Shown here piece after piece: positions 3,328 to 60,000 of a stretch of DNA of 64,000 nt; position 1 is the first letter of the stretch, and the number at the start of each line of letters is the position of its first letter. The DNA is from Octopus sinensis (taxonomy: Eukaryota), in the NCBI RefSeq assembly GCF_006345805.1, contig NC_043000.1:37448001-37512000 (forward strand), written 5' to 3'. The notes under the pieces are model-generated. The model saw only the letters and a program-made list of their open reading frames with translations, was not told the DNA's origin and did not search any database. Position numbers and translations under genes: made by a program.

Positions 3328-3548
3328 AATAACATATCTCAGAGATGCTTAAATAACTATCCTACATTATATTCTCAACAAAGCTACAGAGTACACTTCC
3401 TCACTTTCTTTTTTACTTGCTGCTGTACACTTATCATGAGTCTCAGAAAGTGAGTAGAAGGGAAACAGGGCCAAAGCTGCATGACAGTATTGTAATGTGG
3501 GAAAACTACTTGCCAATTTACAGGTGAACTGAGATATATATATATGCA

Positions 3549-4053: not shown

Positions 4054-4377
4054 GTTAGTTTACATTATAGAAAATATCCAGAGACATATTACGCTTCTTG
4101 GAAATGGAGAATTTGATAGCAATTCTTAAAAAATAAAGCTTAATCACACAAATTTAGTAATCTTGGAGCTTATGACATCAATGTTCTTATCTCTTTGATT
4201 AAAATTTTACTGTTTGGTGGATGATGAATTGTAAAATCCCAGGCTTTAAGGATTGGCATTGTTATTCATTTCTCTTGTTGCTATCTATAAACACACACAC
4301 ATGCACGCAGTGCATGCACAGAGGTATTGGCTGTGTGGTTAAGAAGTTCGCTTCCTGATCATGTGATTTTGGGTAGA

Positions 4378-5815
4378 CCTCCAGGTAGTATCAGAGGAAC
4401 TCAAGGCAGGATTCCCCTAGGAGCTCCTCTATGCTGATGACCTTGCTCTAATAGCCGAGTCACTATCAGAACTAGAGAAGTTTCAGTTATAGAAGCAAGG
4501 TCTAGAATCAAAGGGCCTTAGAGTAAATCTAGCTAAAACCAAAGTCTTAGTAAGTAGGAAGGCAGACAAATCACAAATTCCTTCAGGTAGATGGCCCTGC
4601 TTGATCTGTACAAAAGGTGTAGGTAGAAACTCCATAAGCTTTAGACACATAAGAGGGGCAGTAATATCAAAGGAAGGCTAACTGGGAAGATAGTTTTTGT
4701 GTGTGGCAAATGCACAGGGGCAATAAACACTGAAAATGTGCAGAAAACAGCTTCCATCACATGCCAGGGGAAAAAAACTAAAAGCAAATGATAGCTTCTG
4801 TTTCCTAGGTGACCAAGCTGAGAATGTAGCTTCTAGAATAAATAGCCTGAGCAAAGTTCAGAGAGCTCCTACCTCTGCTGGTAACAAAGGACCTCTTGCT
4901 CAGAATGAAAGGTAGACTGTATGACACATATGTGAACAGCCATGCTACACAACAGTGAAACATGGGCTGTGACTGCTGAGGATGCAAGAAATGAGGCTAG
5001 TATGTTCTGAGGAATGTGTAATGTCAGCGCATATACACGATATGGGTGTAACTGCCCTGAGAGAAAAGTTGGACATAAGAAGCATCAGATGTGGTGTGCA
5101 AGAGAGACAACTGCACTGGTATGGTCATGTATTGAGTATGGATGAGGACAGCTGTATGAAAAAGTATCACACCCTAACAGTGGAGGGAACCTGTAGAAGA
5201 GGTAGACCCAGGAAGACTTGGGATGAGGTGGTGAAGCATAACTTTCGAACACTGGGCATCATGGAGGTAATGACAAGTGACTGAGACCTTTGGAGATATG
5301 CTGTGCTTGAGAAGGCTCAGCAAGCCAAGTGAGACCGTAACTGGGGCTTATGCCAGTGTTGCATAACTGGCCCATTTAAGAGTATGCCTCAATCATTGGG
5401 CAATAAACTATGCTTGAGAAGACCTGTTGAGTCATGTGAAATCATTGTCATGGCTGATGCCACTACTGCTTGACTGGCACCCGTGCCTGTGGCATGTAAA
5501 ACGCACCATTCAAACATGGCCAATGCCAGTACCGCCCAACTGGCTCTCGTGCCAGTGGCATGTAAAAAGTATCATTCGAACGTGGTTGATGCCAGTTCTA
5601 CCCGACTGGCCCTCATGCCAGTGGCATGTAAAAAGCACCCACCACACTCTTGGAGTGGCTGGTGCCAGGAAGAGCATTCAGCTGCAGAAATCCTGCAAGA
5701 TCAGACAAGAGCCTGGTGCAGCCTTCTGGCTTGCCAGTCCCCAGTCAAACTGTCCAACCCATGCCTGCATGGAAAGTGGATGCCAAGCAACGACAATGAT
5801 GATATATATATATGT
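4378..5815 (+). mobile_element. 5'-truncated RTE-clade LINE (RT C-terminus + repetitive 3'UTR)
   Basis: ELLYADDLALIAESLSELEK...GLESKGLRVNLAKTKV; ORF 4982-5284 ...RLHWYGHVL...RGRPRKTWDEVV; ends ccaacccatgcctgcatggaa...(gat)n. Confidence 0.9.
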
Positions 5816-6999
5816 AAAATAAAAGTTAAATGATGATGATGATGACATGGAAGGGAGACACCCACACCATCATTCATTTCTGATCTTCCATGAAAGCCTG
5901 TTTGGCTATGAAGAAATATTAACTTATTTGGAAATAAGTAAGGATTGGTAACAGGAAGGGCATCCAACCATAAAAAATTGGCCTCAATTAATTCTATCTA
6001 AACCATGCAAGCATAGAAAAATTTTAATTAAAATAATGATGTTGATGAGGTGTGTGTGTATGTGTGTGTGTGTGTGATGATGGTACACACACTATAAAGC
6101 AATGAATAATGAAAAAAGGGACAACACAGGAGAAACGAAAATTGACAAATAAGGTAGAAGATGTATAACAGCAAGATGAAGTGACTTAACCTTTCAGACA
6201 TAAGCCCTTCATCAGAAGAAAGAAAGAAACAGAGGGAGTGAGGAGAGAGAGTCAGTGAAAAAAAAAGAAGTAAAATCAGGCAAAATGGGAATGAAAATAC
6301 TGTTCTCATGAGAGGGGGTGATTTAAAAAAGGAGGAGTTAAAAGCAGAAGCATAGTTGCAAGAATGAGTATCTGTGGCTGGAAGTAGGTATAAGTAGGTT
6401 TTAGGGTGTGTATGTGTGGGCGGGCATACATCACTGTAGTGTTGCATGTGTATCAAGGTGTGCAAGTGTGACAGTATAGTGACAATGGTTATTGTGGGTA
6501 GAGGGTGTTGGTGAGTGTGTGTAATCTTTAAGTAGGTAGAGTGAAAGTAATCTTTAAGTGGGTGTGTGGTGATGTGAGAGTGAATGTGAGAGTGAGGGAA
6601 TAAACGATATTGATGAAAATTATTTAATTAATAAATTATATCAACAATAATTGGATGGGGAAGCCAAAAATAATTGCTACAAACATTGTCAAGACTTTTA
6701 GTCTCAAACAAGAGAAAACAATTCAAAACCAAGATGCTTATTATTCTGCAGTGGTCACTGAACAAAACATTGTAAATACTTAATGATTTGTACTTTAAAA
6801 TAGGCCATAATTTTCTACACTTATTCACCATTTATCTGTGTGTTTGATATTTTGTGTATATGTTACGTATGTTAGCGTGACTGTATGTATACAATTTGAA
6901 TATGTTGTTTGAATAGGTTTGTCTGTGTGCTCATACTTTGGTGTATGGAAATATCATCACAGCATAAAGGCATACAATGAATTATAATTATATGTAAGA

Positions 7000-9458: not shown

Positions 9459-9641
9459 AAAGCACGATTGGCTCGTATCCGCATGGCTAAAAACGCGAGC
9501 GGCGCAGCCTTTATCACTAGCAAGAAACGAACTGAGGAGGTCGTACTTGCTAGAGAAAGTGGTCTTGAAGTAGATGACTACAAAGAAGACATATTCGAGT
9601 TACAGCATCATCATCTCTTAACCTGTCTAGAAAAAACTACT
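9459..9641 (+). CDS. Shal: Shal/Kv4 voltage-gated K+ channel, internal coding exon (proximal C-terminus), phase 0-0, 61 codons
   Basis: tttcag|AAA...ACT|gtaagt; translates KARLARIRMAKNASGAAFITSKKRTEEVVLARESGLEVDDYKEDIFELQHHHLLTCLEKTT, matching the Kv4-diagnostic KARLARIR and FELQHHHLLxCLEKTT motifs. Confidence 0.97.
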
Positions 9642-9991: not shown

Positions 9992-11307
9992 ATATTTTAA
10001 CAAGTACATTTTTTAATGGTCTCCTATGATATCATATCATTTCCAAAGCATACCAATTGTCTTACAGAATCATTTGAATTTTTTTTTTTTTTCAATGTTT
10101 TACTAATGAATATTCCTTAATAGCACACAGGTAGTATGTCAACACTTCAAATAGAAGGATTCACAATTTGGGTGAGAATCTTGTCTAGTGCAAATTCTAT
10201 ATTTTGTTATTTTCAAAAGTGACAGCTGGTACACATTTATTGTTCTGGTAAGAATTCAAGAACATGTTGAACTATTTGTACTATGTTATTTCATACATCA
10301 GTATCTCACTTATTTGTTTTCTCTTTCACCACTATATATTTAATTAGATAAAATGTCTGAAGATGTTAATGCTTAAACGTGGTTAAATGTAATCATAATT
10401 CCAAATAAACAAATATGAAATGAAAAAAAGCAACAGATGTTTAAGATGTAATGGTGTTAACCTACTGGCTGAGTGGTGGCTGGTGCATTATGATTCCCAG
10501 TAAAGACGCTTAAATTTCAGAAGTCAAATCTAATTAACTATATATAAGTACCATGATAAAGTACATTTCCTTCTGTAAACATTAAGGGAAGAGAAAACAG
10601 AAGATCAAAAAATATCACATGGTCTATTCAAGAGTAGATGGACACTTCCAGTAAAATTATAGGCATGTACTTTAAAGAAGAAAATGATCCTTAATAATGC
10701 AATTCTGTAACTATGCTTTCATAATCAGATGCATGGTCATTTTCCATCACTTTAGAAATCATAGGCTTCATATCTACAAATTACATTGATACCTGTGGTA
10801 GATTTTAAACTCTTACCCACGAGCCTATAGTTCAGTTCAGTTAAAAGACATCTCCCAAGAATATGATAGAAACACTAATTTATGACAGTGTTTACAAACA
10901 GGTGAGAATATCTTGAAGTTGTGATTTTAATTCACAATTTCAGAGAAAAGCTAAATATAAGTGTAAATTTTCTTGCTACCACTTCTATTCATCATGCAGA
11001 ATACTTCCTTCAGTTTTTTTTAAATTTTAATTCTCTTTTATTGAGTCTAAAAATCAGAGTGAGCAAATGTAGATTTTACCTTTAATTGCTTAGCCATATG
11101 GTTACTATGCCACAAAATATAAATATGGACTAGGTGACAGAGTCTACATGTATAAACTTATACCTGTACTGAATAGATATATGAACCCATGGGGGATACA
11201 CAAATTTTATAATCATATATCCTTTGATGTGTCTTTAATGTTTAATGCAAAATCATTTTCATTTTGTCTTTTAAACGTGCATATATTATTGTTGTATCAT
11301 GCTGTAG

Positions 11308-11424
11308 GGTTTAAATATGGTGCTGCCAGAAGAGTTTGGGAAACAAATATTAGGTCCAGAAGCTGTATTGGACTGGCAGGTGTACTCTTATCCTGCAGAA
11401 AGCTCGGTTGAGGAAGAAAAAACG
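11308..11424 (+). CDS. Shal: Candidate Shal alternative cassette exon A (39 aa)
   Basis: gctgtag|GGT...ACG|gtgaga, 117 nt, phase 0-0, no stops: GLNMVLPEEFGKQILGPEAVLDWQVYSYPAESSVEEEKT; paralogous to 24214-24333. Confidence 0.75.
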
Positions 11425-11954
11425 GTGAGAGTAAAGTGGCACCCTAGATAATCTCCAGTTTTAGTTATCCAACATAGAGACACAAACTACTGCACAATGA
11501 AGTTTTAATTACATCAACCTATAGAAACTTGCTTTGTCTGAGAGCATAAATGATCATTGGAAAAAAGCCGCATGGAAAAGAAACATGAAATCATACATAC
11601 AGCCCTTTGCTATGCATACGAATTATATATATATTTGTATATATGTATATACACACATATATATATATTACTTGTGTGTGTATGTGTGTATGTATATACA
11701 CACATAAATATGCATGCATACATACATCATAGATTTACATTCACGTATACACACACATGAACTATGTTATCCTCATCATTTCTATGTCTCCTTTTTCCAT
11801 ACTGGCACGGTTTGGAAGAGAGATACTGAGGTTTGATACTATCTTTCCTTTGTTTTTCAAGGCAGATATTTTTTCTTGTACTGGTCTTCAACAACAATGA
11901 AAACTATTGAGCTATGAGACATAAAAATGTCAATGACAATGTATAGACACCTAG

Positions 11955-16445: not shown

Positions 16446-16511
16446 GGTTTCTCCACCAGGGGTTCAGATGATTTTACCATTTCTAATCATTTCCAAATGG
16501 CTATATTCCAG
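16446..16511 (+). CDS. Shal: Candidate Shal alternative cassette exon C (22 aa)
   Basis: pyrimidine-rich acceptor ...caattcag|GGT...CAG|gtgagt (consensus donor), 66 nt, phase 0-0: GFSTRGSDDFTISNHFQMAIFQ. Confidence 0.6.
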
Positions 16512-17637: not shown

Positions 17638-18219
17638 CGTGTGCATGTGTGTGATGATTATCACTAACATCTTCATTGCCATTGTGTCAGTTTATAATAA
17701 TTGACTATTTACTAAAGTTCTTTTCAAATTTTGTTATTTGTAAATTTTAACCATTTAAAAATCATATGTCATAAAGATGTATAAGTACACACCTTAATTT
17801 TTTATGAATAAACTAATGAAAAAACTTAGGATCAATAAATTTATCAATAGAATATTTTCACTGACATAACTAAATTATGATTAGTAATAGTGGTGTAAGT
17901 GATAGATAGAGAGAATGAATGGTTGAAAGTTTTTAGAGTAACTAGAAAGACTTTTAAAAACTACCAAGGCATGCCTGCTGGATGGAGACTCAGAAGTAAA
18001 GAGAGCACTAGAATGTTTCATGTAGTAAACCAAGATATTTTAATTAAAATTATACCTTAATCAAGAGAGCAATTATTACCTAAATAAATTATTTAATTTA
18101 GTCAAAAAGAGAAGACAACTGTGAAATTAATATCGGTTTCAAATTTTGGCACAAGGTCCATTTGATTTTGATTTGAATCAAATCAAATGAAATCACAATC
18201 AGATGGAAATTGTAATTGT

Positions 18220-18560
18220 GGCAGATGCCAGTGCTGCTTGACTGGCTCCCATGCTGGTGGCATGCAATAAGTACCATTCATGTGTGGGTCGTTGCCAGTG
18301 CCACCTGACTGGCTCCCCTTGCCAGTAGCATGTAAAAAGCACCATCTGAACATGGCCAATGCCAGTGCTGCCAGACTGGTTCACATGCCAGTGGCACATA
18401 AAAAGCACCCAATACACTTTCAGAGTAGTTGGCATTACGAAGCTGTACAAACATTGCCAGATCAGAGTGGGGCCTGGTGCAGCCGTCTGGCTTGCCAGTC
18501 CCCAGTCAAACTGCCAGCATGGAAAACAGACGTTAAACGATGATGATGTTGATGATGTCA
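18220..18560 (+). mobile_element. RTE LINE 3'-end fragment
   Basis: Same repeated gccagtgccacctgactggc units and (gat)n tail as 5345-5815. Confidence 0.8.
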
Positions 18561-24213: not shown

Positions 24214-24333
24214 GGGTTGAATTCTACTACACGCTTACCATCAAGTATGGAACAAGAAATGCAGTCAATAGAACGTGTCTTAACATGGAACTATTACAAC
24301 TATACAAGTGAAGAGCCTGCTGAACACAAACCG
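24214..24333 (+). CDS. Shal: Candidate Shal alternative cassette exon B (40 aa), paralog of exon A
   Basis: tattctttag|GGG...CCG|gtgaga, 120 nt, phase 0-0: GLNSTTRLPSSMEQEMQSIERVLTWNYYNYTSEEPAEHKP. Confidence 0.75.
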
Positions 24334-25419
24334 GTGAGAAAAGCATACACGATTGCAGTAAGAGCCTTGGCACTGACACTTCATTCAAATTTATGCTGTT
24401 GAAACAGTCAATTTTCCTTCAATGTTCCTGGCTTACCAATCCTATATTTAGAGTATTACTAATTCCAAGTTCTTGTAGCACTTCGCTTCTAGAAATTACA
24501 TGACTCCAGCATTTCCCTTATCCACTTCCTGTTTGAGTATTTTTGAAAACTCTAAATTGTTGTTGTTTCCGCTAATGTTATTCTGTTTCAGACAAGTATA
24601 TATATATTCATTATGTCTCTTTGCAAAATCTTTCCTTCCACCCACTTTCTCTCATATTGTGCTTTTAAACGAATATATTGCTCAATATAAACAAAACTCA
24701 ATACACACACACACACACACACACATCATATATCTACAATACTTTAATATATTATAACAGAAGCCTGATGAACTGGCATACAGAATAGGATACCAGATTT
24801 CATGATGGGTGATATTTAGATCTATTAAGTTTTCATTTCACAGCTTAGTAGAGTTCAGTTCACCTATCATTCATTGAGGAGATTATAAAATAAATCCTTT
24901 AATGCCTTGAAGTTGATTTAACCCTTTTGTAACCATATTTTTAAAGAAATATACTACCCTCACTTCAATTAGTTTTGAAAATAATGAAGATTTTAGTAAA
25001 AAAAAAACAAAACTTTGTCATTATTAGGCTTAAATCATAAAATTTTGATGGAAGATTTTAATTTTGACCACTTTAAAACATGGAAGTTTTCTCAGAGAAC
25101 TGGTCTCAGGTAGTTGGTATCAAAATGGTTAACTGACCCTATTTCCCGACTTGGTGGCCTAAATATGCACTGTATATTTCTCACTATACTAACATAGACA
25201 TCTATGCTATATTTCAACATATTCCAAATCCCAACAAAGATATTTACAATATTTCTCATGCTATATTCCTTATGAATATCAACAACATCTATCAATAAGC
25301 TGCTACTCATGTATTCATTAAATAAGGATATTTTCAACGATCGTTACTTTTACTTAACATCTTGTACAAGGTTCATGTTAATTTGCAAACAATTCTAGCA
25401 TATTTTAAAAATTAATTCA

Positions 25420-25680
25420 TCATCATCCGCTTTCCATGCTGGCATGGGTTGGACGGTTTGACTGAGGACTGGTGAGCCAGAAGGCTGCACCAGACTCAAT
25501 CTGATCAGGCAAAGTTTCTACAGCTAGATGCCCTTCCTAACGCCAACCACTCCGAGAGCGTAGTGGGTGCTTTTACGTGCTACCAGCATGAGGGCCAGTC
25601 AGGCGGTTCTGGCAATGACCATGCTCAAACGGTGTTTTTCACCTGCTACTTGCACTGGCAACGACCACAATCGAAAGTTG
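25420..25680 (-). mobile_element. RTE LINE 3'-end fragment
   Basis: catcatcatccgctttccatgctggcatgggttgg... reverse complement of RTE tail. Confidence 0.8.
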
Positions 25681-36331: not shown

Positions 36332-36360
36332 TATATATTATATTATATATATATATATAT

Positions 36361-36580
36361 TGCCAGTACCGCCTGACTGGCCCCCATGCCGGTGGCACGT
36401 AAAAAGCACCCACTACACTCTCGGAGTGGTTGGTGTTAGAAAGGGCATCCAGCTGTAGAAACTCTGCCAGATCAAGATTGGAGAGCCTGGTGCAGACATC
36501 TGGTTCGCCAGCCCTCAGTCAAAACCGCCCAACCCATGCTAGCATGGAAAGCAAATGTTAAACGATGATGATGATGATGA
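36361..36580 (+). mobile_element. RTE 3'-end fragment
   Basis: ...ccaacccatgctagcatggaaagcaaatgttaaacgatgatgatg. Confidence 0.8.
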
Positions 36581-36613
36581 TATATATGTATATATATATA
36601 TATAATATATATA

Positions 36614-37257: not shown

Positions 37258-37416
37258 GACAGGGAATTTACAGAGATGGATATGACTTTTAGTATACCTC
37301 CTAATAAGCCTTCGGAGACACCTCCACCTTCACCTGATCCATCATTGGCATCTTTAGAGCGAAGGAGGATGACAGGATGCTGTACTTGTAGGTTTTCTCC
37401 ACAACGCCGGTTCCTG
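37258..37416 (+). CDS. Shal: Shal/Kv4 coding exon following KTT, phase 0-0, 53 codons
   Basis: ctttcag|GAC...CTG|gtgagt; DREFTEMDMTFSIPPNKPSETPPPSPDPSLASLERRRMTGCCTCRFSPQRRFL resembles invertebrate Shal DREFxE...P.SP...CC segment; phase compatible with 9459-9641. Confidence 0.92.
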
Positions 37417-39299: not shown

Positions 39300-40715
39300 T
39301 TAGTGCTTTCATACTTTGGTAGCAATCATCAGATTTCAAAATGTATTTAACTGACAGTTGAGTTCTTGTCAACTGTAATACCTCTTAGAACACTCCAGCA
39401 AGCTGAATTTTTCGAATGCAGTTTCGACCAATCTGCATGCAGCTTAAACATCATCACATACCGATATCCTGTACTTTGTTTATATTCATAAGTTAAAGAT
39501 ATTTTTTAATCCACATCATTAACTGGTTGTTATATTATTGTTGTTATTTCCATTCAGAACAGGTTTGAACATTTTTATAAACCGTTTTACTTTCATCTTT
39601 CTTCCAATCTCACTTGTGTCATGTAGTTTGTAGAAAGGAAAAATTAGAAACATTTTCTGACCACATGTTTCTGTATGTTCGTTCAATGGAATTTGGCGAA
39701 CATTAGTATTCCAGATTTGTTGTCTGTGGACATGTGAGTGTTCTGATACTGCATTCCCTGTCTTGCCTATATATAGTTCCTCGCGATTCAGGCATTTAAT
39801 GCAATAGATCAAATTTCTGCTTTTGCAGTTTACATCTGCATTTGCGAAAATATGTCCATTTTTTGTTCTAATGTATCTACCAGTATGCATGTAGTAACAT
39901 ATTCCACATCTGTTATTATTATGCTTGTATACTGTGAATGTTTTAGCCTGTTTGTTCATGTTGAATTTTGCCTTTGTTAATAGTTTCTTCAGGTTATGTG
40001 GTTGCCTTTTGCTTAGGATAAGCGTTTGATTAGTTATGTTTTTTTTTTAAATTTTTCACTTTGTTTATGATTGGTAAATTTGTTTTGAAGATGTTCAAAA
40101 TGTTTTGGTTATGTGGATTGTGTGTTACTAAAAATGGTATTGTGTTCCGTTGATGGGTTTGTCTCTTTCGTGTTGCCCTAAGTTGTCCTATAGTTATCTC
40201 TTTTGCTTGTTGTATGTTATTTTCTATAAGTAGGGGAGGGTGTTTTTGCTTGAGCAGAAATCCTTTGAATTTTATGAGTCATGTGGTTCTTATATTTGGA
40301 CCATCTACTATAGTACAAATTTTCATGGCTAGACAGTACAGGATGTTGCATTTAATGTGTTGGGTGGCATGATTTGAAATTTAAGTACTGGTCTGCATCT
40401 GTGCTTTTGTAATAAATATCACTTGTGATTATGGTGTTGTTTTAATTACCATTATGTTAAGAAATGGTAATTGTGAGTTGCTCATTTCTCTTGTGAATTT
40501 GAGACTAGGGTGTAGATTGTTGAGGAGGGTGCTGAATTCTTCCAGATTTTCTTGGGATTTGGTCCAAATTAGGAAGCAGTCTTTGAGGTATCTTTTCCAT
40601 GTGTCCTCTACATGTCTTTTAAAGGTCATGTCGTAGTTCTCTTCAATTTTTTTATTTAGGTTTTGTTCTAAGTATTCCAATACTGAGTTCACGAAAATGC
40701 CGCAATAAAAAACAT
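39300..40715 (-). mobile_element. Decayed Penelope-like element (RT fragment + GIY-YIG endonuclease)
   Basis: 40429-40692: WKRYLKDCFLIW...LNNLHPSLKFTRE...LPFLNI; 39519-39959: RCGIC...NCKSRNLIYCIKC...LYIGKT...FKPVLN. Confidence 0.9.
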
Positions 40716-40750
40716 GAAAATCAGTCTATGTTTTAACTTTATTCAACTGC

Positions 40751-40754
<4 letters not shown>

Positions 40755-40786
<32 letters not shown>

Positions 40787-40915
40787 TGTATGTATGTATG
40801 TATGTATGTATGTATGCATGTATGTATGCATGCATGCATGTATGCATGTATGTATGTATGTATGTATGTATGTATGTATGTATGTATGTATGTATGTATG
40901 TATGTATGTATGTAT
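40755..40915. repeat. (TATG)n microsatellite
   Basis: Direct inspection. Confidence 0.95.
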
Positions 40916-41725
40916 ACAAACTGTGTAGGCTAAATTTGACTGTTTGCATAAAAGGAAAAGAAAATACAGTATCATATTCAAAAATAAAGTATTTCAAAAA
41001 ATCAAAATGTATCAACTAAATTATGACTGGTAGCATAATCAAGGTAGATGCCCTTGGCTTCCACCATAGCCGACTGCTCTGGAATCTTGAACACCTTGAT
41101 CTTGGCAGCCAGCTTGGCCTTGGTTTTCTCAAGCAGAGCAGTTGGTGTCTTTCTCAACTGCACCCCACACATAGTAATCCATAGGATTGCAATTAGGGAA
41201 GTTAGGAGGGTTGCAGGGGAAGTCATAAAAATTCTCCAAAAACTACTTCTGAGATATAGCAAGGAGCTGAACCCTGCTGTCACATACATGACCTTCCAGC
41301 AGCAACCCTCTCAAGTTAAATATTGACCAGACTCCAGCAACTTAACATAATCATCTGATTTGAGCCTAAGGCCCTGTTCAAAGATGTGGGGTAAAATCAT
41401 GTTACCCTCACTGAAGACACAAATACAAGCTGTGTCCCCTCTCCTGCTTCATAGACACCATTGTAGCTTTACAGCGTTCATAGAACATTGAGCTGCAGTC
41501 ATGATGTCAATGTTTTGATACCCGGTGTGAATCATTATGATACAAGTAATACATTTTTAATATTCAGATAACTTCCAGTCCTCCATGTCAGCTAACTTTT
41601 CCACAACTGTGACTTTAATCTTTATGCTATCCAATGCTGTTGACTGTTCACCAATACATCAAACTATTCTTAAAACAAGAAAGGGGACATAAAAGTAGTC
41701 AAATTTTGCTCAAACACCCTGTATA
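40913..41725 (-). mobile_element. maT/DD37D-like Tc1/mariner deletion derivative
   Basis: Right TIR aaattttgctcaaacaccctgta (41701-41723), degenerate left TIR tacaaactgtgtaggctaaatttgact; minus strand PNFPNCNPMDYYVWGAVEKDTN catalytic motif. Confidence 0.75.
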
Positions 41726-41756
41726 TATAATATATATCTCTATTTGTTTATTTATG

Positions 41757-42800
41757 TTTTGGGACCACTACTGTTCATAATGGCCCTCTCAGACATGCCC
41801 TCAGCCACGCAGAGAGCCACGATCACAAGTTATGCAGATGATACAAAAGTTTCACAGGCAATACAGAACCCTGAAGATATTAAGCACCTGCAATGTGAGC
41901 TGGACAAAATATACAAGTGGGCTGAAAAGAATAGCATGCAGTTCAATGCTGAAAAGTTTCAAGCTCTATGCTGTCAGCACACAAAACAAAATGCAATACC
42001 CAATAAATACACTGGACCTGGAGGGACTGCAATCCCAGAGGCACAATCAGTGTGAGACCTGGGTATTTACATGAGTGATGATACAACCTTTCATGTGCAT
42101 GTTGCTAAATTGGCAATGAAATGTAGGCGGCTGACCGGATGGATTCTTAGAACCTTCAGAACAAGAGACCAGGAAACCATGATGGTCCTTTGGAGGACAC
42201 TTGTCCTAAGCCACTTTGAGTATTGCTCTCAGCTAAGGTCACCATCCAGTGTCAAGTTAATCACAGAACTTGAGGCGATCCAACGAAGCTACACGAAGAA
42301 GATAGCCTCTGTGCAGCATATAAGCTATTGGGAAAGATTGAGACTCTATTCCTTAGAGTGTAGGCGAGAAAGATATGCCATAATATACATCTGGAAGATC
42401 CTAGAAGGACTTGTCCCAAACTTTGGCATTGAGAGTTACACAAATGCCAGAACTGGGCGCCACTGCATAGTGCCAAGGACTCCAAATTTGCCATCAAGAT
42501 GTAGGACAAGATACTGTGATAGCCTGGGCTTCCGAGGCCCACAGCTCTTCAATATCCTCCCGAAGAACCTAAGAGACCTGCATGGGGTTGACGCAGATGT
42601 CTTTAAAATGAAACTGGATCTCTTCTTGTCAGGTATCCCAGATGAACCAACTTCACGGCAGGAGGTGCAAATGAGGGCAGCTGCATCGAACTCTCTCATG
42701 CACCAAATGGCAATTGCTAAAAAGCATTCATGAAGTAAAATCATGTAGCAACACCAAATGGCGGTGCCCCAGCATGGCCACAGCTTGTGAGCTGAAACTA
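41757..42800 (+). mobile_element. 5'-truncated CR1-like LINE
   Basis: VLGPLLFI...SYADDTKV...QFNAEKF; ORF 42071-42733 GWILRTF...LVLSHFEYCSQL...LEAIQR...RRER...RGPQLFNILP; short 3'UTR. Confidence 0.9.
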
Positions 42801-46250: not shown

Positions 46251-47065
46251 ATATTAAAAAAATCAATAAAGTCTATCTTACTGAAGAATTACTAGAGGTA
46301 AAAAGTACTGTTTCAAGATAATAATTTTCATAGAACTTAGCAACAGATTTAGTGTACATATTAACATCCACTACAGTTGTAGTTCTTATTTAGTTACCTT
46401 TTTCATAATTCCTAACCAACAAATTTCAATCCTTAACCCATTGCTGAGTTTCATCATTTTTTTCTTTTCTCTTTACAACTACACCATCAATATTTCTTAC
46501 TCCTTACTCTCCACAAATTTTCTCTCTCTCACTATGCTTAAGATATATACAGTTCTGTATATTTAAACATTATTTCACTTTAGCACTTTCTTCTTGTACA
46601 TTCCTTCTAATTACAATTTTTGCTCTTTAAATAAAACTTGAACTGAAGTAAGTTTCCAGAAGTATATTTCTTTTCAATTTAGAAAAGCTTCAATAGGGGA
46701 CAAGGCAAAACTTCCGTGGCACAGGATTAATAATATGCCCTTGTTCTCAGAGGCCTACTAATTTACTAGGCTGCCCATTAATTGTATTGATCCTTTTGAG
46801 GTTCAACATAATTTTCAAACTGATCCTATATTTTTCAATTGCTTATCAATGATTTAGTGAATATTATATTTTTCTCTTTACATACAAACAGTTTAACACT
46901 TGCATAATTGTATTAGAATTCATGTATTTGTATGTAAGTATAAATGTGTAACTGATTGAATACATTCATTCTCTTTTAATTTCTTTCACTCTCTCTCTCT
47001 CTCTCTCTCTCTCTTTACACACACACACACACACACACACAACACACACACACACACACACACAC

Positions 47066-50061
47066 GGACTCTTACATAAAATGTGGCGTCACAAGAAAAG
47101 CAAAAATCAAGATCCTAAAACTAATTTGAAGCTTCCACAGAAATAGTTATAAAAAAAGTAAGAAGCTTAAGACCAAGCCCAACAGCCTCTGCATGTTGTA
47201 CAGTATCCTTCAGTCAGCATCTGCTGACGACAGTAACCAAAACAAATACAACAATCAAGTACACAAAAGTGAAAAGAGCTCTATGGATCAGTATTGAACT
47301 TCTCAAGGAGTACTCTTCCTGATGGCTTTCCATGCTACCCCAGAATTGATGAACTACTGTACCTCAACAGCTAGAGGAGAAACACTCTGGAAATACTGTC
47401 AAGGTTAGGCATGAATATGCCTTCCAATAAACTTAGGAATGAATTTAACATTAACAGGACAACAGAAAATCAAAGCGTCTCTTAGATTTATGGCTGTTAC
47501 ATTTCAAAGGCTATGCTTTTCCAAGCTAAGCACAAGAGAAATCTACAAAATTCCAAATTAGACAGTGAAGGCCTTAAAGCCCCAGACACAAACAAAAGTG
47601 TTGATTATGTTATAAATGTGTGGAAAATATTGCAAATGTTGTCAGCAGCTCCCCCAAGATGTCATTAAGTTGCAATATAGCATTGTTATTGAAAATATAT
47701 ACACTGCCATTCTGAGGGAAGATTGTCCTTGGTTAAATATAGAGAAGATATCCACACATATCAACATAAGGAATACATGTGGAACATTCTTATCAAAACT
47801 TATATCAAGTGCAAATATAACAGATTTGATAAAGTTTTGGTTAGAATAAAAAAAAATGTGCAATCACAGTGGTTATATACTTTGTACAGTATTTGCACAA
47901 TATTTTTTTCAAAGTCGTTGATGAAAAGAATGTTTGCAGAGAACTACTTTGAAATTTTCAGTTTTTTTACTTAAATCATAAATTCACATTTATACCTGCA
48001 CTCAGTTATGTTAATAAATGTCTCAGTGACAATTAAATTAAGAATTCCAGCAATGAAGCATTATTTCTTTGTTAGAACCCAGCTTCTTCCATAGAAGAAG
48101 AATTTAAATTAAATTAAATGAAAAATAACATATATGCATGCATACAGACATACAATCATGCCAAATGCATAACAGAACTACAGTGTAAAATAAAGGATAG
48201 TGGTGGAAAATTCTAATAAAAACAGCAACGCAGTGTAAGCACATTTGGCCAAATTCTGCTCAATGAGACAAAGTGCTAAAGCCATGCACTGTTGTAGAGA
48301 ACAGTTACCCAGCTGATGTGAATATCATAAAAAATTTAGGAAAAAGAACATTTATGGAGAACTAATGAGAAACTTTGCGAAATATTAATTACCAATAAGA
48401 AAATATCAAAAAAATCCTTAATAAAAAAGATCAAACTTGAATGCAGTCTTGTTTCTTATATAATACATTTCAAAGTGTACATCATACACACACACACAAA
48501 CAAACACAAACACTCTCTCTCTCTCACACACACACACCACACACACACACACACATACACAACACACACACACGGACTCTTACATAAAATGTGGCGTCAC
48601 AAGAAAAGCAAAAATCAAGATCCTAAAACTAATTTGAAGCTTCCACAGAAATAGTTATAAAAAAAGTAAGAAGCTTAAGACCAAGCCCAACAGCCTCTGC
48701 ATGTTGTACAGTATCCTTCAGTCAGCATCTGCTGACGACAGTAACCAAAACAAATACAACAATCAAGTACACAAAAGTGAAAAGAGCTCTATGGATCAGT
48801 ATTGAACTTCTCAAGGAGTACTCTTCCTGATGGCTTTCCATGCTACCCCAGAATTGATGAACTACTGTACCTCAACAGCTAGAGGAGAAACACTCTGGAA
48901 ATACTGTCAAGGTTAGGCATGAATATGCCTTCCAATAAACTTAGGAATGAATTTAACATTAACAGGACAACAGAAAATCAAAGCGTCTCTTAGATTTATG
49001 GCTGTTACATTTCAAAGGCTATGCTTTTCCAAGCTAAGCACAAGAGAAATCTACAAAATTCCAAATTAGACAGTGAAGGCCTTAAAGCCCCAGACACAAA
49101 CAAAAGTGTTGATTATGTTATAAATGTGTGGAAAATATTGCAAATGTTGTCAGCAGCTCCCCCAAGATGTCATTAGTTGCAATATAGCATTGTTATTGAA
49201 AATATATACACTGCCATTCTGAGGGAAGATTGTCCTTGGTTAAATATAGAGAAGATATCCACACATATCAACATAAGGAATACATGTGGAACATTCTTAT
49301 CAAAACTTATATCAAGTGCAAATATAACAGATTTGATAAAGTTTTGGTTAGAATAAAAAAAAATGTGCAATCACAGTGGTTATATACTTTGTACAGTATT
49401 TGCACAATATTTTTTTCAAAGTCGTTGATGAAAAGAATGTTTGCAGAGAACTACTTTGAAATTTTCAGTTTTTTTACTTAAATCATAAATTCACATTTAT
49501 ACCTGCACTCAGTTATGTTAATAAATGTCTCAGTGACAATTAAATTAAGAATTCCAGCAATGAAGCATTATTGCTTTGTTAGAACCCAGCTTCTTCCATA
49601 GAAGAAGAATTTAAATTAAATTAAATGAAAAATAACATATATGCATGCATACAGACATACAATCATGCCAAATGCATAACAGAACTACAGTGTAAAATAA
49701 AGGATAGTGGTGGAAAATTCTAATAAAAACAGCAACGCAGTGTAAGCACATTTGGCCAAATTCTGCTCAATGAGACAAAGTGCTAAAGCCATGCACTGTT
49801 GTAGAGAACAGTTACCCAGCTGATGTGAATATCATAAAAATTAGGAAAAAGAACATTTATGGAGAACTAATGAGAAACTTTGCGAAATATTAATTACCAA
49901 TAAGAAAATATCAAAAAAATCCTTAATAAAAAAGATCAAACTTGAATGCAGTCTTGTTTCTTATATAATACATTTCAAAGTGTACATCATACACACACAC
50001 ACACAAACAAACACAAACACTCTCTCTCTCTCACACACACACACAACACACACACACACAC
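47066..50061. repeat. Near-identical tandem duplication, period 1508 bp
   Basis: 47066-48573 vs 48574-50061; (CT)n(CA)n microsatellites at all three junctions; only a few differences seen, mostly 1-bp indels. Confidence 0.95.
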
Positions 50062-52109
50062 ATGCATGAACAGATGATAAGCTTCCCCATAGCTTCTGTG
50101 TACCTATTTTTTACTTATGCATTGGTCAACCTCAACTTATGGTTGAAGACACTTGCTCAAAGTAGCATGTAGTAAATCCAGACAGCATGGCTGAGAAGCC
50201 AACTTTCTTACTTTCTATGTATAGTAGAGAAAAGCAGCAGATTACTTGTGGGTTGGAAGTGAACTGAGAGCAGACATTCATTGAAAGTTGCCCATGGACA
50301 TTCATTTCAGCATTAGAGTGTCTATAAAGAACTAGAGACTTTAAAATCAAGCTGGAATATATATAAAGATGATACAAACAAGGCTGCATTTATTTCGGAT
50401 ATCAACTCTGAATTGGCGTATGCTATAGGTTTATGACAAAAATCATAAGCTTTAGTCTTTCGACAATAGAGCAAAGTTTATATTGGTTAATGATGGTTAT
50501 ACTTATGAAATAATTTAAACATACATTCTTCACATCACCATTATCATTTTTATGTCCACATTTCCATGCTGGTATGTGTTAGAAGGGATTTTTTTTATGG
50601 CTGGATGCGCTTCTTGACACCAACTCTTTTAGTTATCTCTTACACTACCCAGGGATATGGTTTACCTATTCTAAAATCTGGAATTATATAGGGTATTAAA
50701 AAGATTTCTCTCTAAAATACGTAACTGTTTTATTTTGCATAGGTCTTCACTTTTGCAAAGAATCATCACTTTTGCTTAATCAAAAGTGCCTTGGAAGTTA
50801 GTCAATTGGCCACAAACAAAGGAGTGAAACAAGTTCTGCATTTGTACATCATTTCTCAATAATGAAATATGTTGTTGCTGCTTTTTATTTTTTTCAATGC
50901 AGCTAAATGAAACTTGTGCATTAATATATAGAGAAAAATAGAAGTCTGTGCTGAGAAATGATATCCTTGCTAATCCCCTTTGTTTTAATAAGTTTTATAT
51001 ATTAGATCTAGCCATTTTGCCTGCAGCCATTTTGGTAAAGACAAATTGCAATTTTATGAATACATTGTGGAAACTTATTAACTGTCCTCCACAAATGCGA
51101 GTGCATGTATTTGTATTGCACATAGATGTATTTATGTGTCTGTATTTGTTTATGAATGTTTTTGAATATGTGTCTATGCCTATGAGCCAATATTCAGCCA
51201 TTTGGGTAAAATTATTGTTACACTTGCATATATACAAATGTAGAGATATGAATGCATCTTATGTATGCCTGCAGATGTCTTTTCTAGGAAGATCTATTTC
51301 TGTATTTGAAGTTAGTTAGAATGATGCATTACTCACCCCATGCTCTCTCTCTCTCTTTCTTCCTCACTCTCTCTTTCTCATGTGTGTTCCATCTGTGTGT
51401 GTGTGTGTGTGTGTGTGTTTAAAAGAAGCTTTGCATATGGTTTAAAAAATATGTGTATTTATTTGTTGGATAGTCTGAGTATATAAATATGTTGAACTAC
51501 ACTACATTGGAAAGTTGTCATTACACAAAATTATGCACTGTAAGATTCATTATATTAAAGCTCTCCAGAAATACAACACAGTAGTAATAATATGTGGTAT
51601 GGTATTATATGTGTATGTGACTAACAGATGTTAAAAGGGGTATATGCATATAAGCCATATTGAAATAGAATATCACATAATTATGTAGTGACAGATATCA
51701 GATACACTATGCTTTTTTATAAGACAAGACCCCTATATATATTACAGATTATCCACAGGATTGAAGAATTTTGGAGTGTTCATGAATTATAAAAATTTTC
51801 ATACCCCATTACCAATTTGATCAACTATATCATTCTTTGAAAATATCACAACAAAAATTAACAAATGTATATGTATTAACTAATATTTTTGCCTTCAGTG
51901 AAGATTTGAACGAAAACATCTAAACTAAAAGCTTTGAGCTCTTACATACTTTGCCACATTCCAACTTTCACATAAAGGAATTCACACACACACACATGCA
52001 CAGATACACACACACACAGATACACAAATACATATATACATACACACATATATATGTGTGTGTGTGTATGTGTGTGTATGTATGTTTATATATACACACA
52101 CACACACAT

Positions 52110-55029: not shown

Positions 55030-55925
55030 CTAGTCATGTATCTAGAATCAGTTATGATAGAGCAGTATCATGCACACCACATCTGATGCCTCTTATACCC
55101 AACTTTTTTCTCAAGATGTTTACTCTCTGTCGCTGCATAACCAGCAAAGCATACTAGCTTCACTTCTTTCAAGCCTTTGCATGTCCTCAGCAGTCACAGC
55201 CCATGTTTCAGTCATGTAGCATGGCTGTTCACACACAGGCATCATACAATCTACCTTCCACTCTGAGGGAGAGGCCCTTAGTTACCAACAGCAGTAGGAG
55301 CTCTCTGAACTTTGCCCAGCCTCTTCTTATTCTAGCAGCTATGCTCTCAGAACATACATCTCCACTACTGACTTGGCCACCTAGATAACAGAAGCTATCA
55401 ACTACTTCTATCTGTTCCCACCTGGCATTTGATGGAGTCTATTTACTGTACATTTTTAGTATTTATTGTATCTGTGCGCCTTCCACACACAAAAACTATT
55501 TTCCCTCTTAACCTTCCTCTGATCTGTCCATAGCACCTTTTATGTGTCCATAGCTTACACTGTTTACTTCTTATGGAGCTTCTATGCCTTTTCTACAGAT
55601 TGAGCAGGTTCATATACCTGAAGGGGTTTGTGATTTGTCTGCTTTCCTACTTACTAAGACTTTGGTTTTTACAAGATTAAATCTATGGCCCTTTGATTCT
55701 AGACCTTGCTTCCACACCTGATATTTCTTCTCTAGTTCTGGTGGTGATTTGGCTATAAAAGCCAAGTTATCAGTGTAGAGGAGCTCCTGGGAGCACCCCA
55801 ACTTAAATTCCTCTGTTATTGCCTGGTGGATTATGATGAACATGAGAAGGCTGGAGACTGATCCTTGATGAAACCCTACTTGTACCCTGAATTCATCATT
55901 ACACCCATTGCTAATCTTCACTTGA
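55030..55925 (-). mobile_element. RTE-clade LINE RT fragment
   Basis: EFRVQVGFHQGSVSSLLMFII...ELLYTDNLAFIA...GLESKG. Confidence 0.9.
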
Positions 55926-57229
55926 TATATATAACAAATGATGGATAGGTATCAATTCATTACAACTGTTTCCAACAAATTTTTTAATTGATTAATGGGT
56001 GCATTATCTCATTATAAAAAAACGTTATCTTCAGACGAATACATGAACTACATTATTAAGAACATTTTAAAACATTTAAAATCCATGGTATGTGCATATT
56101 TTGTGATTTCATAATCTTTGTTGATCACAGAATGAGATTGCCAAATCAAAACAAATTAAATGGTGGTTTTATAGCAGAGGAGAGCACTGTGTCATATGTG
56201 GGTAGGGTGTATTTAAGATTTATAGTCTTGAAGGTGGTTAGTCAGCATGGTTAGTGGTGGTGGTGGTGGTGGTGGGAGGGGGAATGGACAGCTGGGTGTC
56301 TCCTCACCACAATGAAGAAAGAATGAATCTTATATATATATATATATATAATCTTAGGTTCTTGTAGTGTATAAGTATCCTCATTATTATTTGATTCATG
56401 GGCAATTGTCAGAGTTAGTTTTTATCCTTTCTGTTATTGTTGGTTAACATCATCTAGTGGTCAAATAAATTTTCACACTTCAAACGAAATTTGGTACCAG
56501 TGGCGTGGTTGTACTGACTGACTACTATCTAGATAAGACAATTTGCTATATATGGCCCTACCTAACTTATTAACGTTATCTTCTTCTTCTTCTTCTTCTA
56601 TATCCCCCATCCCACATGATCTCTATGTTACTCATCCGATTACCACACTTTTGTTTACTTTTTATTTCCCCCTGATATAAGCTCCCCCCCCCCCCAAAAA
56701 AAAAAAACAGTGTCAGAAGGCACACAATGTGACAGCACTCCTTTGATGAAAGTCTGAGGAAGTGCCATTCTAATGTTTAAAACTGCAAACATTACATAGA
56801 TTTTCTCTTTGAAATTTTGCATAAACTGGCATTGCAAGCAGAGTTGGTACAAAAACACTTGTAATGAATCATTAAAGATATGTTAAAGAATTTCTTTGTC
56901 TTATTATTTGGATTGTGTGTGTGTGTGTGCACGGTAGCATATACACAAACGTACACAGTTACATGACATATAATATATATTACGTTAAAATTCTTATAAG
57001 CCAATACAATGGGGATTGAAATAAAGGAGTAAAAACTATTGTAACAAAGACAGGACAACAGTTTACACTTTACTTATATGTCAGTATTTTGAGTGCGAAT
57101 ACGATTTTGCCTGAATAATATCTAGGATGGTGTTGAGTTGGTACTTTGTGATATATACACAGGCCTGGCTATGTGGTAAGAAGCTTGCTTCCCAACCACA
57201 TGGTTTCAGGTTCAGTCCCACAGCTACAA

Positions 57230-60000
57230 TTTCCATTTGATTTTCATTTTGATGTTGATGTACTTAACACAATAGGTCTCCTCAAGTACAGCAGGTTGCC
57301 CTACGATCCAAGGTATTTTTGAATGGGCTGGGGCTGGTTATGTGAAACTGGTGTAGGATAAAGCTGTGAACTCACTTTATTTGCTGGGTCTTCGCAGTCA
57401 CAGCATATCTCCAGAGGTCTTGGTCTTTTGTCATTGCCTCTGTGAGGCCCAACGTTCAAGGGTCATGCTTGACCACCTCATCCCATGTCTTCCTACATCT
57501 ACATCTACTCTGGATTCCTTCAACTGTTTGGGAGTGGCGCTTCTTCACACATCCCTCCTCATCCATCCATAGTACATGACCATACCAGTGCAAACGCCTC
57601 TCTTGCATGCCACATCCTTTGCTTCTTATGTCCAACTTTTCTCTCAGGGCGCTTACACTCTGTTGTGTGTGCACACTGACATTACACATCCAGCGGATCA
57701 TGCTAGCTTCATTTCTTTCAAGCCTTCGCATGTCCTCCACAGTCACTGCCCATGTTTCACTACCGTGAAGCATAGCAGGTTGCACATATGCTTCGCACAA
57801 TCTACCTTTCACTCTGAGCGAGAGGCTCTTTGTCACCAGTAGAGGTAGAAGCTTTCTAAAGTTTGCCCAGGCTATTCTTATTCTAGTGGTAACACACTCT
57901 GAGCATCCACCCCAACTATTAACTTGGTCACCTAGGTAGTGGAAGGTATCAACTACTTCTAGTTTCTTCCCCTGGAGTGTGATGGAATCTGTTTTCTGAG
58001 CATCTGTGGTGTTTATTGCTCCTGTGCATCTGCCACACACAGAAGCTATCTTCTTGGTTAATCTTTCTTTGATGTGTCCATAGCTTACACTAGGTACATC
58101 TTATGGAGTTTCTACCTACACCAGGTCTACACATCGAGCAGGGCCACCTACCTGAGTGGGTATGTGATGTGTTCGCCTTCTTACTTACTAGAACTTTGGT
58201 CTTTGCTACATTGATTCTAAGGCCTTTTGATTCTAAACATTGCTTCCACACCCGAAATGTCTTTTTCTAGTTCTGGTAGTGATTCTGCTACGAGGGCCAG
58301 GTCATCAGCATAGAGGAGCTCCCAGGGGCAACCCAGCTTGAATTCCTCTGTTATTGCCTGGAGGACTATGATAAATAAAAGGGGCTGAGGGCTGAACCTT
58401 GGTGGACCCCTACTTCTACCCAGAATTCTTCACTATACTAATTTCCAATCCTAACCTTACTAAGGGCCTCTCTGTATAGGGCCTGTACAGCCCGTATTAA
58501 CCATTTATCAATCCCCAGTTTCTGCATTGCCCACCAGATAAGGGATCAGGGGATCCTGTCAAAGGCTTTATCCAAGTCCACAAAAGCTAAATATAAGGGT
58601 TTATCTTTAGCTAGATATTTCTCCTGCAGTTGTCGAATCAGGAATATGGTATCAGTGGTGCTTCTACCCAGCACATAACCGAACTGCATTTCATCTAAGC
58701 AGACTCTCACCCTATAACCCTCTCCGGGACCTTCATCACCTGATCCAGCAGTTTGATACCCTGTAGTTATTTCTATCTGGAGCATCACCTTTACCCTTGT
58801 AGCAGTTGACTATGGTGCTGCTACGCCAGTCATTGGGTATGACTCCATCATGAATTACCTGGTTTACAATGCGGGTGACTAGGCCAGAGCCCACACCACC
58901 AGATATTTTAAGCATCCTAGCAGTGATTTCTGATGGGCCGGGGGCTTTTCCTGGCTTCATACCCTTAATTTGCTTTATCTACAAGGGAGCTGTCTATTTG
59001 GATAGCTGGTCCTTCTACTGGGTCAAGATTTAGCAGGATCTCCTTCCATTCATTGTCCATGTTCAGCCTTATCAAAATGCCTTATTCAAGCCATTTTCTT
59101 TTCCGAATGATTAAAAGCAAGTGCACCATCATCCATGCGGTCACATTTCTCTCCTGTGACATCACAATTTTCTCTCACACACTGTCTTGTAATCCAAAAT
59201 ACCTCAGTTCTTTGGTTCTCACGTTGCTGGACATTGGCAAACTTCTTTTCTGCTTTGCCCGTGGTTATGTATACCTGCCACCCAGCCTCCTTCTTTTTTG
59301 GATTGGTCTACTTCTTGGTATCCTTCTGGCTTCGAGCCTAAAGTCACTAATAACTAGCCTATGCTGAAGGGTCCATTCTCCATTCAGGAGGGTTTTTGTA
59401 TCTAAGAGCAACCCTGTATCCTGCTGTGTGGTGAGGATGAAATCAATCTGGCTAGCAGAGTCACCTGATTGATAGGTTATCAGGTGGCTGTCTGGTTTCC
59501 TGAAATTAGTGTTGTAGATTAAAAGGTTACATGCATCACAGAACTCCAGTAGCCTAGTTCCCTTGTCATTTCTGGAACCAATACCATGGCCCCCATGTAC
59601 ACCAGTGAAGATACCGGATTGCCACCCAATATGCCCATTAAAATCTGCAGCTGCAAAGATGAGGTCATTACCACTCGTCTTTGAGGTAGCCTGTAGAAGG
59701 GTTTCATAAAAATGGTCCTTCTCATCATTTGGTAGGCCTGCTTGTTGGGTGTAGGCAGAGATAATTGTAGCTGTGCTGTTCTGCAGGACCAGCCTAAGCC
59801 TAAGCACACTGTCACATACTCTGACAACCTCTATGACTTTATCTACCCATTTCTCCGCAAGGGGTATGCCTACACCCCCCATTCCATCTGTGTTACCTTG
59901 CCAGAAGATTTTGTATTTATGTGCCTTGCCTGTGAGGACCCTAGCTGAAGCTCCTCTCTATCTTACCTCATGTATGCATTACACATTGACATGTCTCCTG
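57230..60000 (-). mobile_element. Near-full-length decayed RTE-clade LINE (APE endonuclease + RT)
   Basis: 59265-59882 GGVGI...IISAYT...DFNGHIG...QIDFIL (APE); 58960-57456 GKAPGPS...QFGYV.GRSTTD...FVDLDKAFDRIP...YADD...TWDEVVKHD. Confidence 0.93.

Follow-up and report, generated by a model that had tools for sequence, protein, structure and literature searches.

Exons of the Shal/Kv4 channel tail

The window, by which we mean the whole 64-kb stretch of Octopus sinensis DNA analyzed here, contains exons for the C-terminal tail of the octopus Shal/Kv4 (KCND) A-type potassium channel. Channels of this family carry the fast transient A-type current, and KChIP subunits as well as kinases act on their cytoplasmic tail. 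Five exons were located by mapping octopus proteins back to the window, all of which are on the plus strand, in phase 0 and of a length divisible by three. The first is a constitutive exon of 183 nt (9459-9641), which encodes KARLARIRMAKN...DIFELQHHHLLTCLEKTT between the splice sites tttcag/AAAGCA and ACT/gtaagt (the slash marks the exon boundary), and the 3' end of which is the conserved LEKTT splice junction. The last is a constitutive exon of 159 nt (37258-37416), which encodes DREFTEMDMTFSIPPNKPSETPPPSPDPSLASLERRRMTGCCTCRFSPQRRFL (DREFTEMD...GCCTCRF...), carries a conserved CC pair and is bordered by ctttcag/GACAGG and CTG/gtgagt; the exon that follows it lies beyond the end of the window. 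These two exons adjoin, upstream and downstream, a cassette region of 27.6 kb between the exon ending in ...HHHLLTCLEKTT and the exon starting with DREFTEMD, and three cassette exons are situated in this interval: exon A (11308-11424; 117 nt; GLNMVLPEEFGKQILGPEAVLDWQVYSYPAESSVEEEKT), exon C (16446-16511; 66 nt; GFSTRGSDDFTISNHFQMAIFQ; splice sites ttcag/GGTTTC and CAG/gtgagt) and exon B (24214-24333; 120 nt; GLNSTTRLPSSMEQEMQSIERVLTWNYYNYTSEEPAEHKP). All three cassettes are already known, as they are present in the RefSeq model XP_036358514.1, which reads ...CLEKTT-A-C-B-DREFTEMD... and is 100% identical to the window.

The identity of the gene is evident from domain and protein searches. The exon at 9459-9641 matched the Pfam family DUF3399, which is the Kv4 C-terminus, with an E-value of 4.6e-7, and the exon at 37258-37416 gave a weak match to the same family. 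A protein search was performed with the window exons padded to channel length, such that the scored part of the query (residues 426-618) was derived entirely from the window. Both flanking exons were 100% identical to Shal X2 of O. bimaculoides (XP_052822834.1, 630 aa) and to the "subfamily D member 1" model of O. sinensis (XP_036358514.1, 397 aa, partial). The same search also retrieved the Shal proteins of numerous molluscs, annelids and arthropods. Exons of the DREF...GCC... type, homologous to the exon at 37258-37416, occur in molluscs, annelids and arthropods. Likewise, the exon at 9459-9641 was aligned by tblastn to residues 426-489 of human Kv4.2.

Several repeats were also observed in the window. 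A SINE-like repeat of about 200-300 nt is found in four copies, 74-88% identical, in the Shal introns (5451-5816, 18219-18556, 25424-25655 on the minus strand and 36359-36590), one of which is located 1.1 kb downstream of exon B. Decayed retrotransposon fragments were seen at 4374-5333 (+), 39519-41000 (-), 41744-42733 (+) and 55068-60000 (-). Minus-strand open reading frames at 55-60 kb matched the Pfam families Exo_endo_phos_2 (endonuclease-reverse transcriptase) and RVT_1, and the open reading frame at 39519-39959 has a weak GIY-YIG match that suggests a Penelope-like element. In the intron downstream of the DREF exon, the segments 47001-48559 and 48513-50066 form a tandem duplication of about 1.5 kb with 99% identity, which is either recent or an assembly artefact.

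Homology and conservation of exons A and B

A sequence-only reading of this locus had proposed that exon B is an ancient duplicate of exon A. The translation that it gave for 24214-24333 on the plus strand was recovered unchanged, and the splice sites are of the tag/GG and CG/gtgaga type that it described (ctgtag/GGTTTA...AAAACG/gtgagagt for exon A and ctttag/GGGTTG...AAACCG/gtgagaaa for exon B). The sequence CGGTGAGA was located at just two positions in the window, 11423 and 24332, and leads to exon A. Frame 1 alone is open in each of the two exons, as read from the sequence.

With peptides as short as 39-40 aa and an identity of merely 33-37%, it could be argued that the similarity of A and B is due to chance or composition. 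In a local alignment with BLOSUM62, however, the pair scored 57, against a mean of 20.0 (sd 4.1) for shuffled controls, which corresponds to a z of 8.9, and none of 20,000 shuffles reached as high a score; the outcome of a semi-global alignment was the same. When 1,195 stop-free segments from all six frames of the window were compared, A and B were reciprocal best non-self matches (A to B 57, next 40; B to A 57, next 32), and in a tblastn search of the window the pair had an E-value of about 1e-3, with the next match at 0.4 or higher. The two peptides align over their whole length, in register with the splice sites, and are identical in 14 columns (G, L, N, L, P, E, V, L, W, Y, Y, E, E and K), and the similarity was repeated with an independent A-type exon from another taxon. 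The shuffle and six-frame-segment tests reject chance or composition as the source of the similarity, and we give this explanation virtually no weight.

At the DNA level, the codon-aligned identity of A and B is 48%, as compared to 26% expected from composition. Both exons begin with GGNTTRAAT and end with CG/gtgaga; they share phase, strand and intron, and their lengths are nearly the same (117 and 120 nt), while no similarity was detected between their 300-nt flanks. These features bear out the proposed ancient duplication, and we interpret A and B as paralogous exons that originated by an old tandem exon duplication. Exon C is unrelated in sequence to A and B, with z below 0. None of the three cassettes resembles the remainder of the channel protein, and Pfam searches with the A and B peptides alone returned nothing meaningful.

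The independent A-type exon was identified on contig L006 (run ERR3431203), which is from a more distant taxon. Positions 3395-3518 of this contig match positions 11306-11429 of the window with 75.8% identity (E = 2.6e-19), and the exon alone aligns, not the introns. The exon is 117 nt long, has cag/GG and CG/gtgagc splice sites and encodes GINMILPEEFEKKNSEPEPVLGWQVYTYPAESSADEEKP. Exon B is about as similar to this exon (score 60, z = 9.4) as to the octopus exon A (score 57), and at the sites that distinguish the two A-type exons, B shares the state of the distant exon three times and that of the octopus exon once. Since the octopus A is not a closer match to B than its distant counterpart is, and the flanks are randomized, the duplication would, by this indirect argument, predate the split of the two taxa. 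The upstream LEKTT exon was absent within 3.4 kb on L006, and neither protein-profile and short-ORF searches nor the L006 contig yielded a B-type exon of a distant species.

A different origin would be that A and B are two copies of one intronic repeat, such as a transposon, each of which was exonised separately. The richness of the introns in SINE-like and LINE copies is in line with such a process, but a third copy is absent from the 64-kb window. Furthermore, the likeness stops exactly at the splice sites, with unrelated flanks on either side, and A and B have their phase, near-equal length and first and last codons in common. We also compared a joint profile of A and B to 1.84 billion representative proteins. 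The matches were spurious translations of CRISPR repeats and three short genomic open reading frames, each of which is the exon A or the exon B of another species. No full-length protein with A or B was found among these representatives, in which closer relatives are collapsed at 50% identity. As nothing else in this collection is similar beyond the same two exons in other species, A and B do not appear to belong to a dispersed repeat family, and we regard the separate exonisation of two repeat copies as extremely improbable. An old tandem exon duplication thus remains our preferred interpretation.

The conservation of the exons was studied in genomic contigs from a closely related species (Logan runs SRR118693xx), with an identity to the window of 80-90% in the introns. 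Exon A is identical at 114 of 117 positions, as compared to a distal intron divergence of 13.7%, and exon B at 118 of 120 positions, as compared to 9.2%; the deficit of mismatches in the exons relative to the distal introns is significant in both cases (binomial P = 3.8e-5 for A and P = 8e-4 for B). The three changes in A and the two changes in B are all synonymous and at third positions, such that no nonsynonymous change was observed against five synonymous ones. The suggestion of the sequence-only reading that the exons are under purifying selection is thereby upheld, and so is its conserved W/Y motif: A, B and the distant A-type exon all retain the VL.W..Y.Y core, and the longer pattern LP...E.VL.W..Y.Y...E...E.K is invariant across all three.

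Constraint at the protein level is much stronger on the constitutive tail exons than on exon A, to judge from comparisons with two other taxa. On the mRNA contig L008 (run SRR23936172), which represents another cephalopod Shal, positions 1834-2177 are 79-82% identical at the DNA level to the two constitutive exons. The corresponding protein, P0009, shows about 98% identity in the part encoded by the first exon and has DREFM...FNVPP for DREFT...FSIPP in the second. The distant A-type exon, by comparison, is 67% identical to exon A in protein at 76% DNA identity.

It might still be asked whether A and B are expressed as coding exons at all. Their only supporting protein is a Gnomon model, partial and with an unusual N-terminus, that could be an ab initio artefact, and the conservation could then reflect an intronic regulatory element or another gene. 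Against this, the conservation in the distant taxon coincides with the exon edges, with the AG and GT dinucleotides kept and the frame open, and none of the five differences from the closely related species alters an amino acid, all of them being at third codon positions. Moreover, each exon has a single open frame, and the peptides of A and B resemble each other and retain the aromatic core. We therefore consider it very unlikely that A and B are non-coding, and from these patterns of substitution we take them to be real, constrained coding exons.

The regions next to exon B are also more conserved than the distal intron. There are 4 mismatches at 99 sites in the 100 nt upstream of exon B in the comparison with the closely related species, and 1 mismatch in about 32 nt past its donor (24334-24365 on the plus strand), after which the conservation falls. 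Raised conservation of this kind around an exon is typical of regulated alternative exons.

Isoforms and inclusion of the cassettes

Two forms of the tail were identified among gene models and assembled contigs, which constitute our evidence for isoforms, rather than reads. The LEKTT-A-C-B-DREF form is represented by XP_036358514.1, which is the sole database protein with exon A. The LEKTT-DREF form, in which A, C and B are all skipped, is represented by XP_052822834.1, seven Logan mRNA clusters (P0009-P0015) and the mRNA contig L008. In searches of proteins of 22-70, 80-255 and 340-1081 aa, no spliced fragment with A or B was recovered other than XP_036358514.1. Co-inclusion of A, C and B is thus documented by one partial RefSeq (Gnomon) model, which could have strung together junctions that are each supported on their own or could in part be an ab initio prediction, and we consider it probable that A and B are included together in one transcript.

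Because A, C and B are all multiples of three in length and in phase 0, any combination of them keeps the reading frame, and we infer that each cassette can be spliced in or left out independently of the others. The pyrimidine-tract values are 0.65-0.70 for the cassette acceptors and 0.80-0.85 for the constitutive acceptors. Weaker acceptors are as expected for optional exons.

Mutually exclusive exons usually arise by exon duplication, as exemplified by Dscam1 in Drosophila and by exons 5a and 5b of SNAP-25 in vertebrates, both of which are tandem duplications. The earlier reading had suggested that A and B are mutually exclusive, in which case every mRNA would contain either the one or the other. 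Like the exons of Dscam1 and SNAP-25, A and B are homologous, of equal phase and near-equal length and were duplicated within one intron, and the form that includes both is known from a single gene model. However, the two exons are not direct neighbors, since the unrelated exon C intervenes, and they are 12,789 nt apart. Furthermore, the form that skips both is the one commonly assembled, and B is also present in the sole protein that contains A, so that forms with both and with neither exon are seen among the models and contigs.

Nor did we find a mechanism that would enforce exclusion. Both exons are multiples of three, such that double inclusion and double skipping alike keep the frame; steric hindrance is not possible over 12.8 kb; and all splice sites are GT-AG, so there is no U2/U12 incompatibility. 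Docking and selector sequences were searched for with RNAduplex in eight pairs of exon-proximal intron regions (400-600 nt), and the pairing was not above that of dinucleotide shuffles (absolute z at most 1), in what is a crude test on a single species. In their length, spacing, intervening cassette and isoform pattern, the octopus exons differ from the pairs in Dscam1 and SNAP-25. The claim of mutual exclusion is thus not sustained, and we judge it unlikely that A and B are an exclusive pair. We instead favor the interpretation that the cassettes are independently optional.

The sequence-only reading had also pointed to a second donor downstream of exon B, GCA/gtaaga after position 24357, the use of which would add the residues VRKAYTIA. 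This donor is present in the sequence and in frame, but its use was not supported, as XP_036358514.1 joins ...EHKP straight to DREF and thus uses the first donor. The segment of 24 nt between the two donors (24334-24357 on the plus strand) is conserved at 23 positions in the closely related species, and the sole change would be nonsynonymous in the putative frame, replacing K by N. The conservation also continues for a few bases beyond the second donor. The segment is most likely intronic, and its conservation most likely reflects splice control.

The insertion point and the KChIP-binding segment

The LEKTT junction is also a site of alternative splicing in the human Kv4.3 gene. The insert of human Kv4.3-long, GLSYLVDDPLLSVRTSTIK, consists of 19 residues (488-506) placed after residue 487; in its presence the current is augmented less by KChIP2b and inactivates more slowly, and a PKC site lies within it (PMC5296356). 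The insert also lowers the palmitoylation of the downstream cysteines C546/547 (bioRxiv 10.64898/2026.07.03.735752). The long and short forms of KCND3 are alike the octopus forms in that the family is the same and the junction is the same, after ...HHHLLxCLEKTT and before (N/D)(H/R)EF. Furthermore, the human exon is a multiple of three in length, in phase 0, optional and starts with Gly-Leu, and the human form without the insert is fully functional (PMC5296356). The human gene differs in having one cassette of 19 aa, whereas there are three in the octopus (39, 22 and 40 aa), two of which are paralogous. No similarity of A, B or C to GLSYLVDDPLLSVRTSTIK was detectable (z = -0.4, 0.6 and 0.2, respectively), so that the functional analogy is one of position only. 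All three octopus cassettes begin with GGNTT (Gly-Leu/Phe), as does the Kv4.3-long insert with GLS..., and the shared glycine may reflect either a need for a helix-ending Gly after LEKTT or the context of the acceptor.

C-terminal splice variants are also known from other invertebrate Shal genes, among them those of lobster and Drosophila. At the LEKTT junction itself, the DREF exon is skipped in Shal X3 of Haliotis and in X3, X4 and X8 of Mytilus, while an insert of 14 aa is present in X2 and X6 of Mytilus and an insert of 23 aa in Owenia. No relation of A and B to the inserts in Mytilus and Owenia was detected, nor are the inserts detectably related to one another, and an insert resembling A or B is absent from all 118 Shal proteins that were recovered outside Octopus. 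To judge from these comparisons, the LEKTT junction appears to be a splice hot spot in many lineages.

In Kv4.2 with KChIP1, the segment S472-D495 occupies the crevice between KChIP and the channel N-terminus, with contacts made by H479, L482 and F493, and the mutant H491A/F493A/V494A alters the modulation of recovery by KChIP1 (PMC8566240). In an alignment to the human Kv4.2 sequence, the cassette junction is placed between T489 and N490. The insertion point would thus be inside the short C-terminal segment that is captured by KChIP together with the channel N-terminus, and inclusion of a cassette would, because of this position, move the (D/N)xEF loop away from the HHHLL...LEKTT helix that precedes it. 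Inclusion of A, B or both would also add one or two copies of the aromatic VLxWxxYxY motif, each followed by an acidic tail rich in Ser and Thr. The tails SSVEEE and TSEE of A and B fit the casein-kinase-2 pattern S/T-x-x-E when read by eye. A prediction of XP_036358514.1 with AlphaFold without an alignment had a mean pLDDT of 35, too low to be informative on the tail.

Our hypothesis is that A and B are paralogous Shal/Kv4 cassettes derived from an old tandem duplication, which together with the unrelated exon C are each independently optional, such that the common mRNA skips all three and a minor form carries them, and that their inclusion would retune KChIP-dependent gating, by analogy with the insert of 19 residues in the mammalian Kv4.3-long. 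We consider this explanation as a whole to be likely. By the same analogy, the cassettes might perhaps also alter phosphorylation, or the palmitoylation of the downstream CC pair.

A more specific, and rather doubtful, possibility is that A and B represent a lineage-specific binding module, composed of an aromatic VLxWxxYxY strand and a phosphorylatable acidic tail, that is spliced in at 0, 1 or 2 copies within the KChIP-captured segment. This could result in a graded, copy-number-dependent capture of the tail, or in the recruitment of a new partner. If true, it would be a splicing "dosage" device of a type that has not been described before for Kv4 channels.

The retuning of KChIP-dependent gating by optional cassettes remains our preferred hypothesis, and A and B do not reveal a new kind of splicing control. 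Rather, they appear to be a tandem-duplicated, selectively maintained cassette pair at a known Kv4 splice site, and we found no description of their paralogy in the literature searched. In mammals, the optional exon at this junction is remodelled in heart failure. The octopus seems to have a richer version at the same site, with three optional exons of which two are conserved paralogues, which singles out the junction as a recurrent site of channel tuning. The natural variants of the octopus channel may thus offer a simple and testable set for asking how insertions into the KChIP-binding segment change gating.
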